DNA of 64,000 nucleotides from Bugula neritina (Eukaryota; Animalia; Bryozoa). Below the pieces are notes generated by a model, which made no database searches, was not told the DNA's origin, and worked only from the letters and a program-made list of their open reading frames with translations. Both the position numbers and the translations under genes were made by a program. Numbering within the stretch: position 1 is the stretch's first letter; every line of letters starts with the position of its first letter. This document shows positions 491 through 64,000 of the stretch, one piece after another. The stretch lies in NCBI GenBank assembly GCA_964035545.1, contig OZ037767.1:7884581-7948580 (forward strand), written 5' to 3'.

Positions 491-3400
491 CTTATGTTGA
501 CAATTTCTAGCTGAAATGGCAAAATGGTGACAGTAACTTTTCCTGAAGTCACGAGAGGCTCAGTAAATAGGCTCTGATTCTTAACTAAAATCATTATTCG
601 AGTTTTAAAGTTATAAGTTATAATTTGAAAAAAGCAACACAAAAAAGCCAAAATTGAGACAGTCATAAAACTGTCATGCACCAACACAATCCCCAGTTTA
701 AAGAGCGTATTAAAGTAATTGTAGTTTTAGAAAAGCTGTGTGATTGTTTTTACTTTGTAAAATCCTGGGCAAAAATATGTTTCACTATAACATGTTGTGG
801 TCTTTATGAAACGATGTTGTGACTAAACCAAAAATTCATAGGAGATCACATTTGGATCTTTGGCATTGTGTATTGCTTTGAATAAAAATATTGCTGAGCT
901 GAGCTTGTAATGTCGTAATTGGTATATTTAAAAAGAAAGATATTTACAATTATAATTGATTGCTATATTGTTTTAATTGTAGTTGAATAGAATTATATAG
1001 TGTGATACTAACTGAATAGTTCCGTAACAATAGTTGCTGGTGGACTGGCTGGACTTGGTGCGTATACTGAACCAGCTTGAGCTGTGCATTCTATCACAGA
1101 AGCAGACGTTAGATTACATATAGAAGTGTTTTCTTCATCTTGATTGTTTGATGTAAAATTAACGAATGGTATAACGCCATCTGTATTGTTGTAGTTGCAT
1201 TTAATCTAAAAGAGAAAGCATTTATTTTACCAATATACTTTGCATTTTATACAAAATAGTTATGCATTGATAACTTTATGATTTTTATCTACATTAGTTA
1301 ACCAGTCATATAAAACTGGCTGACCCATCAATGCAATTTAAAGATATGCAGTCTTGTATGCATTTTTGGAAATGTTTTGAAATAGATTACTGCCAGAAGA
1401 AAATTGTAGCACTAATCACCGTTTGTTATAATTGTAGTTAAACTCACTAAATAATAAGTAATTACTCCTGTGTATTCTTCAGGTTTGTTTAGAGATGCAT
1501 TTATGCAGTTTTCTTCCGATGATTCCAAAGCAATACTGGGTGGAGTTGTTGGTTCTACAGTAAATTACAAAATTTTGGAAAGTAGTCTTTCATATAATTG
1601 AATAGAAGCATAATTCTGATACAAGTGAATAAAATAAATAATAGTTTCTGAATATATTCATGCTATAATTGTGAATTTCAGCTGTTTGGTAAAATTCTTG
1701 AAAACTGAATAATCAAACCATATTTGGGTTTTGACTTTAAAATTGCCATGTTGTTCTTCGAAGCTTATGGAGTTTACAAGTTTCACTATGAGACTGTTGA
1801 AAGTTTGTTTATAGGTGATCTATATACTAAAAGGTTTATAATACAGTTTTTTATATATATTTAATAAAGTGTTCTTACCAATGTTTTTAGTGAAAACTGT
1901 CAGTTCTTTAGTAGAACGCTTGTTTTGTTCATTTCTAGCCTCCACCTCAAACATGTAGCTGGTGTTGGGCATCAGATGAGAGAAAACATTTTGCTTACTG
2001 AACTTTACCTGAGGGAAACTTTTTATTCTGAAACTTAATTCTGTTGTATCATTTGGTCCACACCGACTTACGAGGGTCTATCAGAAAATCACAAGACATT
2101 GCATACAGTGTAAAAGGACATAAGAGACTAGTGGTATTTAGCACAGCTTTCATTGCCAAGATGACGTTATAAAGATTCTAATATTATGTTATGTACTAAA
2201 TCAATAAATGAGCATACCTGGTTTTTAATAATTGTAACTTTCCTGTAGCTTTCCCATTCTTTCTGGTAGACATACCCATCTATGTAATCTAGTTCTCCAA
2301 CAAATTTTGGTGCTGAAAAATGAATGTTACTGCACACATATATAACGTGACTTATGATATATGTACTGTTATATTTTTGTAAATAGTGGAGCGATCTTAA
2401 TCTCAAAAAAACACACGGAAAGATGAGTTTTTTACTGTCAACTAATGATTAAGGACACTAATTTAATTATTGTTTCCAGTTTTCTATTTAAGGTAACTTT
2501 TGTAACATTGAAAAACATGTTGTTGAATAGCTGACCACATAAACCTATATAATAAAAGACAATATTATTTTGATTACTAAAGTTGAGCTTGTTTATCAAG
2601 TGTCACTATCCACAGTAATAAAATAATATCAAACCTGCACATGATGTGTAGCCACTGGATTCACCTAAATCTCCTTCGCCAGCTTCATTTATTACTCTAA
2701 CTTGACACACAATTAGCTGGTAAGGTTGATATCCTTTGCTCACATCTTGGTTCACTGTTTTGTTACTAACATTTTTCCAGTTGGTCATATTAGTACAGAT
2801 AAACTGCAAAGAATTAGTATTTAATGAAGCTAAAAAATGGAATTGTTAGCAACTGAAGTGTTTGAGAGATTAGAATACAAGAAAACATATTTTACTTGAT
2901 ATCTGAGAATTGTGCCATAAGTGTACTCTGGAGGTTTCCAGGATAAAGTAACAGAGTCTTCAGACTTTCCAACTACAGTCACTATCGGTGCATCAGAAGC
3001 TGAAAATAAGTTAGACTGCTTGATTACAAGTTATTGTATCACATTTTAAGCACGGTGTTTAGACAAACAAACTACTAATTATTGCTAGTGCTATTTTGAT
3101 AATTTTTCTAAAGAAATAGTGTAAGTTTTTTGACAGGCATATAAATTTACATAGTGTTTGTATTGACCAGCCTACGATTAATGCATCAGAGGTGCATATA
3201 GTAGGTATCAGTATGCTTGAATAAAACCAATTACAATTGTCATTTTATATCAAACAACAGTCAACAAATAGGAGCTGATATAAAATTATTGAACCAACAT
3301 GTTAATAATGTTAATGATTAATTTTATTAGCCATATCATCTAATTTCAATTGTTTTTTATTTTATTTAAGATATTATAGCAGTGCACAGAGGACAGGAGA

Positions 3401-63300: not shown

Positions 63301-64000
63301 TATCTAAATGAATTATTTTTCAGAGGTTGCATTTAAACCTTTTGACTAAACTAAAATATAAGGACTTTTCAAGTTGAGTTATTGTAGTTTATATGAGCTA
63401 ATAGGGTCACTATAATATATGCCAGAACACCTTAATTTATATAACTTGGGTAATATAGAAACTCACATTCCATGTAATGGTGTATTTCCAAGTTTCTCTG
63501 CCCAGCTCTTCAGATTTTTCCTTGAATATATCACTTATGGATACTACATCTGGTGGGTCTGAATCTATAGAATACACATACATTTATTATTCATTATGCA
63601 TATACTACAATATAATGCTAGGAAAAAATAATGATGGATTAAAATCATCTCAATTAATAATATTGAGGTGAGGAAGAGACAACTATGCGAATTGGTTATG
63701 AAAGCACATTATTACAAATAGATTGATTATAGGTTTAATAATTTCAAAAATTATTATTTGAACTTTTATTAAGAAGTTTTTTAATGGCATGATTTTGACT
63801 GAAATAAAATCAAGATTTTTTAATTCTATCGGAGAATTGGCTGAAGTAATTTGTTCAGTCGATTCAACAATAGGTTGGAAAAAGCAGCTTCAAATTGAAA
63901 TGGTATATTTTTAGCTATAATCATAACTAGTAATGATACATGCACTCACTTGCACAACTAGTATATGCTGATCTTGTGTCTATCTGACTAGGTCCATTTT
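57329..64000 (-). CDS. Gene C (3' part): paralog of gene B, FN3 repeats + TM + tyrosine-motif tail; 5' part outside the window
   Basis: Exons 63950->64000, 63467-63564, 61993-62191, 61444-61553, 60710-60875, 60166-60251, 59241-59457, 58877-58983, 58333-58516, 57329-57654. All are phase-consistent and open. The tail contains IYMN, VSYEVM and HVYARI. Confidence 0.88.
58669..58857. repeat. (TG)n microsatellite in a gene C intron
   Basis: Long TG tract. Confidence 0.95.
61180..61404. repeat. (CA)n microsatellite with (catgcaaa)n insert
   Basis: CA tract with about five catgcaaa units. Confidence 0.95.

Follow-up and report, generated by a model that had tools for sequence, protein, structure and literature searches.

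A lectin-receptor gene cluster in the bryozoan Bugula neritina with two predicted cytoplasmic outputs

What do tandem copies of a lectin-bearing receptor connect to inside the cell? The question is raised by a stretch of 64,000 nucleotides from the bryozoan Bugula neritina (GenBank assembly GCA_964035545.1, contig OZ037767.1, here called C3), which covers C3:7884581-7948580 of a 216-Mb assembly and is called the window below. A preliminary description of it recognized three paralogous genes on one strand and one relic, built from F-type lectin domains (FTLDs) and fibronectin type III (FN3) domains; it saw a diversifying, glycan-sensing family of membrane receptors and a candidate immune or allorecognition locus. 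The three genes (A, B and C) and the relic are all reproduced here, and every gene that we discuss lies on the minus strand. The best-supported reading is that they belong to a lineage-specific family of modular recognition receptors that would signal through phosphotyrosine, with tail-bearing and phosphatase-bearing members on related ectodomains. A megabase cluster of receptors with two alternative cytoplasmic modules is probably the best explanation overall.

Coordinates are collected in Table 1. The exons reported are those backed by similarity to paralogues, by Pfam or by motif checks; a simple exon-chaining script called spurious short exons where introns are rich in transposons and also among the phosphatase exons. 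Gene B was modelled by reading the minus strand together with exon chaining, its boundaries being corrected by hand against paralogues, and for the phosphatase part of gene A the exons that carry motifs are given. Joined spliced sequences served for frame checks, for comparison of paralogues and for the ratio of nonsynonymous to synonymous substitution (dN/dS).

Gene A provides the first output. Within the window it is a chain of 20 exons with GT-AG introns throughout, consistent phases and no stop. Upstream of the first lectin domain a single ATG exon has a hydrophobic core, and we place the signal peptide there; the three lectin domains follow in direct tandem. The juxtamembrane, transmembrane (TM) and protein tyrosine phosphatase (PTP) exons are found 0.7-13.8 kb past window position 1, on the same strand and in the same phase. 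The membrane-proximal domain matches Pfam Fn3_PTPRU (2.6e-8) and contains a furin-like RSKR site, and a TM helix follows. Farther downstream, five exons of a first PTP domain (D1) and one of a second (D2) match Y_phosphatase (up to 6.2e-13). The catalytic motifs WPDHGVP and HCSAGVGRTG of D1 are intact, read across a splice, and DFWxMVW, KCEQYWP and the Q-loop VQxxxQY are present as well. The marks of a classical receptor-type PTP (D1 motifs, TM segment and second PTP domain) are thus all found in gene A. We join ectodomain to phosphatase because strand, order and phase are compatible and no start or stop intervenes. Gene A is a predicted receptor tyrosine phosphatase with an ectodomain of three FTLDs and five FN3 domains, so the locus would mix two signalling outputs on related ectodomains. 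The tyrosine-signalling tails first proposed for the whole array hold for B and C; gene A ends in phosphatase domains that lie outside the window.

The second output is the tail itself. Gene B encodes a signal peptide, (FTLD-FN3)x3, FN3x8, a TM helix and a tail of about 85 residues, and this 30-exon model is exactly the architecture that was noticed at the outset. In its strictly alternating intron phases, phase 1 separates the domains and phase 0 falls within each FN3. FN3-8/9 and FN3-10/11, which are 55-66% identical in amino acids, represent a duplication of two domains within the gene. Gene C, completed with flanking DNA, has 22 exons and an intact open reading frame (ORF) of 1249 codons that reaches about window position +87463; its lectin exons lie beyond the window end. 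The plan is gene B's, with four FN3 domains after the lectin region, four fewer than in B. A four-codon upstream ORF (ATG AAA AAA TGA, 54118-54107) overlaps the start codon of gene B; in gene C the counterpart of this upstream ATG is in frame and begins the signal peptide.

What can be read from these tails? Gene B's has three tyrosines, in YMNK, VSYEVM and VYAII. Among nine aligned tails, 35-92% identical to that of B, the tyrosines and an FxKE-x3-YE core are retained. The first tyrosine is mostly YxN, the invariant Y-E lies within [V/L]xYE[V/I/P]L, and the C-terminal VYAx[V/I] is present in eight of the nine. We used published definitions of the immunoreceptor tyrosine-based activation motif (ITAM), Yxx[I/L]x(6-9)Yxx[L/I], and of the strict inhibitory motif (ITIM), [I/L/V/S]xYxx[I/V/L] (PMC9546547). 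The strict ITIM occurs in five of the nine aligned paralogues, as LSYEVL, VGYEPL, VNYEVL (twice) and VTYEIL. 'Tyrosine-signalling tail' is a fair description of what such sequences predict; 'ITAM' is not. Named relatives of the tail exon are confined to 'hypothetical' proteins of Bugula neritina, which are short fragments. Logan contigs (SRR4020080/83/84) contain a B/C-type tail exon with its upstream intron at about 76% identity, and a related organism thus carries this type of gene. The contigs were considered as evidence of expression and rejected, being unspliced genomic DNA that includes the intron.

The clearest view of the two outputs comes from gene Z, the next neighbour downstream of A. 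A and Z are colinear over 15 exons at 69-92% amino-acid identity, comprising the signal peptide, FTLD1-3, FN3-1, FN3-4, FN3-5 and both juxtamembrane exons; counterparts of A's FN3-2 and FN3-3 are absent from Z. Gene Z ends in a tail exon that takes the place of A's TM and phosphatase exons, and A's TM exon is unmatched in Z. Paired receptors are recognized by clustered genes, close ectodomains and different signalling modules. Gene A with its phosphatase and gene Z with its tail have all three features, and by their predicted products they are a pair: one kind of ectodomain with two outputs. Between the juxtamembrane and tail exons of Z lies an exon-like open stretch (C3:7836318-7836562, minus strand) with four cysteines in sushi-like spacing. 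As a candidate exon of Z it was set aside: it has no Pfam match, and a paralogue (P0012) is modelled in GenBank with the corresponding position left out.

Both kinds of receptor are assembled from the same two-exon units. The lectin modules, three in A and three in B, are bounded by phase-1 introns, as expected from the two-exon lectin modules that had been said to be common to the genes. A profile of the first exon, built from five such halves and compared with the PDB, matches the fucolectins FBP32 of striped bass (3.6e-20), Sm-hPAF (1.6e-15), SpX-1 (8.6e-11) and the eel agglutinin AAA (7.1e-10), with CBM32-type domains at only about 6e-5. The second-exon profile gives weak matches, and Pfam assigns the exons only to the superfamily models F5_F8_type_C_2 and F5_F8_type_C. 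Membership of the F-type-lectin fold family is supported by these profiles. The FN3 modules have a phase-0 intron inside, phase-1 introns outside and two invariant extra cysteines. Single FN3 exons match Pfam fn3 at 7e-6 to 8e-4; in the PDB the profile of the first exon finds titin, Eph and insulin-receptor FN3 domains (2e-13 to 1e-6), and that of the second finds RPTP-delta FN3 (1.3e-4). Since phase-1 introns flank every two-exon module, the gain, loss or exchange of a domain leaves the reading frame intact. The preliminary description also stated that FN3-2/3/4 of gene A correspond to FN3-4/5/6 of gene B. This colinearity is confirmed: A2-B4 (z 7.9) and A4-B6 (z 10.0) are each the unique best match, and A3-B5 is strong (z 14.8), though it comes marginally second to A3-B3 (z 16.4).

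The relic shows the two kinds of gene combined. Its FN3-4a exon (27029-27199) is 83% identical in amino acids to FN3-4a of gene B, the segment 26000-26070 is a copy of the first D1 exon of gene A, and its D2 exons (25140-22730) are frameshifted copies of gene A's at 70-98% amino-acid identity. The D1 catalytic core, the TM exon and the juxtamembrane exons are missing. At least once, then, exons for a B/C-type ectodomain have been joined to exons for an A-type phosphatase.

How have the copies evolved? Exon by exon, B and C are 80-96% identical. Synonymous divergence (dS) runs from 0.02 to about 1 along the A/Z and B/C genes, a variation that suggests exchange between copies. Within the B/C pair dS is as low as 0.02 and as high as 0.9 along the gene, and introns are between about 70% and 99% identical, a mosaic that we read as exchange acting on constrained coding sequence. 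The last introns of B (30649-31326) and C (57655-58332) are 99.1% identical, against about 4% of differing bases in the tail exons next to them, and a recent conversion tract seems to end at this boundary. 'Diversifying' is not borne out by whole-exon comparisons: dN/dS is 0.42 overall for B/C and 0.3-0.5 for A/Z, no exon class is clearly above 1, and gross positive selection is not seen in either pair. The coding sequence of both pairs is constrained.

The window is one part of a cluster of about 1 Mb (C3:7.1-8.1 Mb). Genome-wide, at least 137 exons match the FTLD profile, and the best 48 all lie within C3:7.12-8.12 Mb. A genome search places 13 tail exons on C3 between 7.11 and 8.09 Mb; the cluster also has 11 close copies of the juxtamembrane exon, four copies of the D1 catalytic exon at 96-100% identity and one at 60%. 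Coinciding positions point to about eight genes that have both a juxtamembrane domain and a tail, to four that have a tail only (B, C, D and a broken copy) and to four or five that encode phosphatases. Counting paralogues beyond the window, as the preliminary description had proposed, thus gives a cluster of no fewer than 48 FTLD exons, along with 13 exons for tails and 4-5 phosphatase genes. Its characterization as a tandem birth-and-death family of type I membrane proteins also fits, since members differ by domain gain and loss, include pseudogenes and show mosaic divergence. Further clusters of FTLD-type exons occur at C5:0.46-0.52 and 1.25-1.34 Mb, C6:6.38-6.64 and 12.0-12.9 Mb, C4:19.9-20.0 Mb and C8:9.2-10.4 Mb, and the genome thus shows a great expansion of the lectin domain. 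Some of the C5 exons adjoin phosphatase and juxtamembrane exons.

From the gene structures, domain identities, conserved motifs, purifying selection and family size observed here, we infer what the family might do, including its ligand binding, phosphorylation, expression and biological role. One module, a single exon for a TM helix and a three-tyrosine tail of about 85 residues (its ITIM-type site having M in B and C), belongs to B, C and Z. The other, a PTPRU-type juxtamembrane domain with its furin-like RSKR site, a TM helix and tandem PTP domains, would serve A; the relic is a dead chimera of both kinds. The related ectodomains may bind the same class of extracellular ligand. Tail receptors could then be phosphorylated on tyrosine and recruit SH2 proteins, and phosphatase receptors brought to the same ligand could strip the phosphotyrosine again. 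Such a family would set the threshold for a cell-surface recognition response, whether to a microbe, a symbiont or a neighbouring colony, and the cluster is a candidate for an on/off system of recognition. It may act in immunity or in allorecognition. A more specific proposal is that this is a bryozoan paired-receptor system, with a built-in-phosphatase arm and a phosphorylatable-tail arm on interchangeable FTLD/FN3 ectodomains shuffled exon by exon in a megabase cluster, deciding the reaction to microbes, the bryostatin-producing symbiont or adjacent colonies. We put this forward tentatively and think it possible rather than probable.

Several observations weigh against the reading of paired recognition receptors. 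The ectodomains of A and B/C are distantly alike (FTLDs about 30-45%), and the close pair, A/Z, has one member outside the window. The pTyr loop of D1 in gene A is KCRY, a variant of KNRY. No tail carries a strict ITAM: B and C read YEVM-x10-YAII or YARI and the paralogues YEVL-x10/11-YA[A/E]V, which fail because the spacer is too long and Met or Val stands at +3. Nor do B and C have a strict ITIM, VSYEVM being one residue off with Met for Leu at +3. In this assembly the frame of gene B is broken by a premature TAG, which a genome search flagged independently; gene C has AAG at the site, and B has three extra bases there. With its intact ORF, gene C bears out the statement that the genes differ in intactness. 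Exon 10 of gene B, which carries the TAG, has 243 nucleotides and exons 10 and 11 together have 468, both divisible by three, and we speculate that skipping either exon 10 or the two together would preserve the frame.

The lectin sites also weigh against it. A review of FTLDs gives the fucose motif as HX24RXDX4[R/K] and the calcium motif as h2DGx (PMC5712786). The fucose-site Arg is invariant across the six in-window FTLDs. The His is replaced in A3 (Asn) and B1 (Trp), and the Asp in A2 (Ser), B1 (Arg), B2 (Gly) and B3 (Gly), a variation among lectin-site residues that agrees with what had been noticed at first. FTLD-A1 alone has His, Arg and Asp together, with His-Lys where the last Arg is expected, and the loop from the Asp to the basic residue is longer in these domains than in AAA. 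The calcium motif is present in A2 (AVDGV) and A3 (AIDGK), has Asn for Asp in A1 and is absent from B1-B3. The fucose-binding triad is therefore missing from five of the six in-window FTLDs, and those of B lack the calcium motif too; fucose binding by these domains is not supported by their residues. Glycan binding is uncertain because the sites are degenerate, and the description of the family as 'glycan-sensing' is doubtful.

Could the cluster have nothing to do with non-self? It might be an expansion of developmental or adhesive R2-type receptor PTPs (RPTPs) with decoy relatives, acting in tissue or neural patterning. The PTPRU-type juxtamembrane domain, furin-like site, D1-D2 and multiple FN3 domains of gene A are the standard layout of adhesion-type RPTPs, and the FN3 profile matches RPTP-delta. 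Conserved developmental RPTPs are not typically found as about 18 or more cluster members, with other genomic clusters besides, pseudogenes, chimeras and exchange between copies. Furthermore, a profile of the tail compared with 1.84 billion representative proteins has eight matches, all of them short Bugula-type fragments or low-complexity noise, and none outside Bugula-like sequences. We consider this explanation unlikely.

A second alternative is an allorecognition locus in the strict sense, whose polymorphic products would determine self and non-self in colony fusion and rejection as at the Hydractinia Alr cluster. The host is colonial, and the genome paper on Bugula expected allorecognition genes (PMC7576161). 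Type I receptors with tyrosine-motif tails lie here in a large tandem array that includes pseudogenes and members with differing numbers of domains, a layout that in general terms is also that of the Hydractinia allorecognition complex (PMC9546547). Against this stand the low dN/dS of the paralogues and the better-known part of FTLDs in binding microbial or gamete glycans (PMC5712786). In addition, the exons scanned with Pfam contain no Ig domain, the mark of a Hydractinia-type complex. The likeness to Alr is an analogy only, and allorecognition in this sense seems decidedly unlikely. Finally, the window might hold a largely decaying array of non-functional duplicates, as the premature stop in B, the clearly dead relic and the transposons in introns would have it, but the frames of A (ectodomain, TM and D1 motifs) and C are intact over 20 or more exons with canonical splice sites and dN/dS is well below 1 in both pairs, which makes this very improbable.

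Table 1. Features of the window and of neighbouring gene Z (window positions unless prefixed C3)
Feature	Position	Strand	Remarks
Gene A, in-window part	1013-21444	minus	signal peptide, FTLDx3, FN3x5
Gene A signal-peptide exon	21369-21444	minus	phase-1 donor; 88% identical to gene Z's
FTLD-A1	19589-19783/19172-19399	minus	sole near-canonical fucose site (His, Arg-x-Asp)
FTLD-A2	17379-17600/14132-14359	minus	3-kb intron with microsatellites and dispersed repeat
FTLD-A3	13649-13936/12896-13132	minus	Asn in place of His; calcium motif retained
Gene A FN3-1	5499-5646/5159-5358	minus
Gene A FN3-2	4605-4699/3827-4031	minus
Gene A FN3-3	2896-2999/2635-2803	minus
Gene A FN3-4	2218-2312/1879-2077	minus
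Gene A FN3-5	1448-1554/1013-1205	minus
Gene Z	C3:7835674-7865429	minus	next downstream neighbour of A, outside window
Gene B	54110-30323	minus	30 coding exons, 1632 codons; every intron GT-AG
Gene B lectin region	42257-49269	minus
FTLD-B1	49060-49269/48578-48814	minus
FN3-B1	47799-47905/47081-47246	minus
FTLD-B2	46303-46524/45699-45920	minus
FN3-B2	44941-45044/44143-44305	minus
FTLD-B3	43688-43930/42257-42481	minus
In-frame TAG	43781-43779	minus	gene B exon 10, the first exon of FTLD-B3
Gene B FN3-3 to FN3-11	31327-41901	minus	18 exons
Gene B last exon	30323-30648	minus	TM helix, tail of about 85 residues, stop codon
Gene C, in-window 3' half	57329-64000	minus	begins within end of FN3-3
Gene C FN3-4	63467-63564/61993-62191	minus
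Gene C FN3-5	61444-61553/60710-60875	minus
Gene C FN3-X	60166-60251/59241-59457	minus
Gene C FN3-Y	58877-58983/58333-58516	minus
Gene C TM/tail exon	57329-57654	minus
Relic	22500-27199	minus	chimeric pseudogene, B/C-type FN3 exon and A-type PTP exons
Degenerate retroelement	6000-9700	plus	GC-rich; in gene A's 7-kb intron
Tc1/mariner-type transposase remnant	28066-28290	plus	between relic and gene B

The AT-rich sequence of the window (GC about 31%) is interrupted by one GC-rich insert, the retroelement, with a GC content of 0.40-0.46 against 0.31 elsewhere and an RT_RNaseH match (1e-8) at 9011-9226. The transposase remnant matches DDE_3 at 1.2e-5, below the Pfam cut-off. A dispersed repeat of about 1.2 kb, with copies about 75% identical, lies in introns of genes A, B and C (15542-16797, 51832-53139 and about window +68200-69000). 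The first two copies were considered as a second gene relic and rejected: the frame changes, they are intronic, and the sequence recurs in an intron of gene C. Long (TA)n, (TG)n and (CA)n microsatellites also occupy introns of the three genes (14750-15600, 31640-31790, 56100-56290, 58660-58870 and 61100-61410); the last, only about 35 bp from the first FN3-5 exon of gene C, misled the exon-chaining script.

If the reading of two cytoplasmic modules on related ectodomains is right, an F-type lectin ectodomain placed directly on a tyrosine phosphatase, and matched by relatives that bear tails, would give each of the two families an architecture new to it; full-text searches of the literature found no paper that joins F-type lectins with receptor phosphatases or FN3. 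It would also be a clear example of exon shuffling, phase-1 boundaries letting cytoplasmic outputs swap between receptors. We know of no recognition genes from bryozoans, a colonial phylum, and the cluster would give them a concrete candidate locus for immunity, symbiont recognition or colony fusion.

How does the family compare with systems already known? Like F-type lectins such as AAA, FBP32 and the membrane-bound Drosophila furrowed/CG9095, it has FTLDs, whose N-terminal half matches solved ones by profile (1e-10 to 1e-20); they are repeated in tandem and accompanied by other modules and a TM segment, as is described for that lectin family (PMC5712786). The difference lies in the partners of the FTLDs, which here are FN3 and either a phosphatase or a tyrosine tail; the 2017 review lists neither among co-occurring domains and never uses the word 'fibronectin' (PMC5712786); most copies here also depart from the HX24RXDX4(R/K) triad, and those of B from h2DGx. 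Gene A resembles the R2-type RPTPs (PTPRU/M/K/T and LAR/PTPRD) in its FN3 repeats, in the PTPRU-type domain next to the membrane with its basic cleavage site, in the TM segment and in having a D1 that looks active, followed by a D2. It differs from them in beginning with three FTLDs rather than MAM or Ig domains, in the KCRY of its D1 where they have KNRY, and in belonging to a lineage-specific cluster with 4-5 nearly identical copies of D1. The closest parallels in organization are KIR, Ly49, SIRP and the Hydractinia Alr genes: clustered type I genes with related ectodomains and differing signalling parts, tyrosine-motif tails, pseudogenes and exchange between copies. Unlike these, the bryozoan family has no Ig domains and has tails that miss the strict ITAM. 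One of its two arms would be an enzyme within the receptor itself, where the known systems use an ITIM that recruits the phosphatase.

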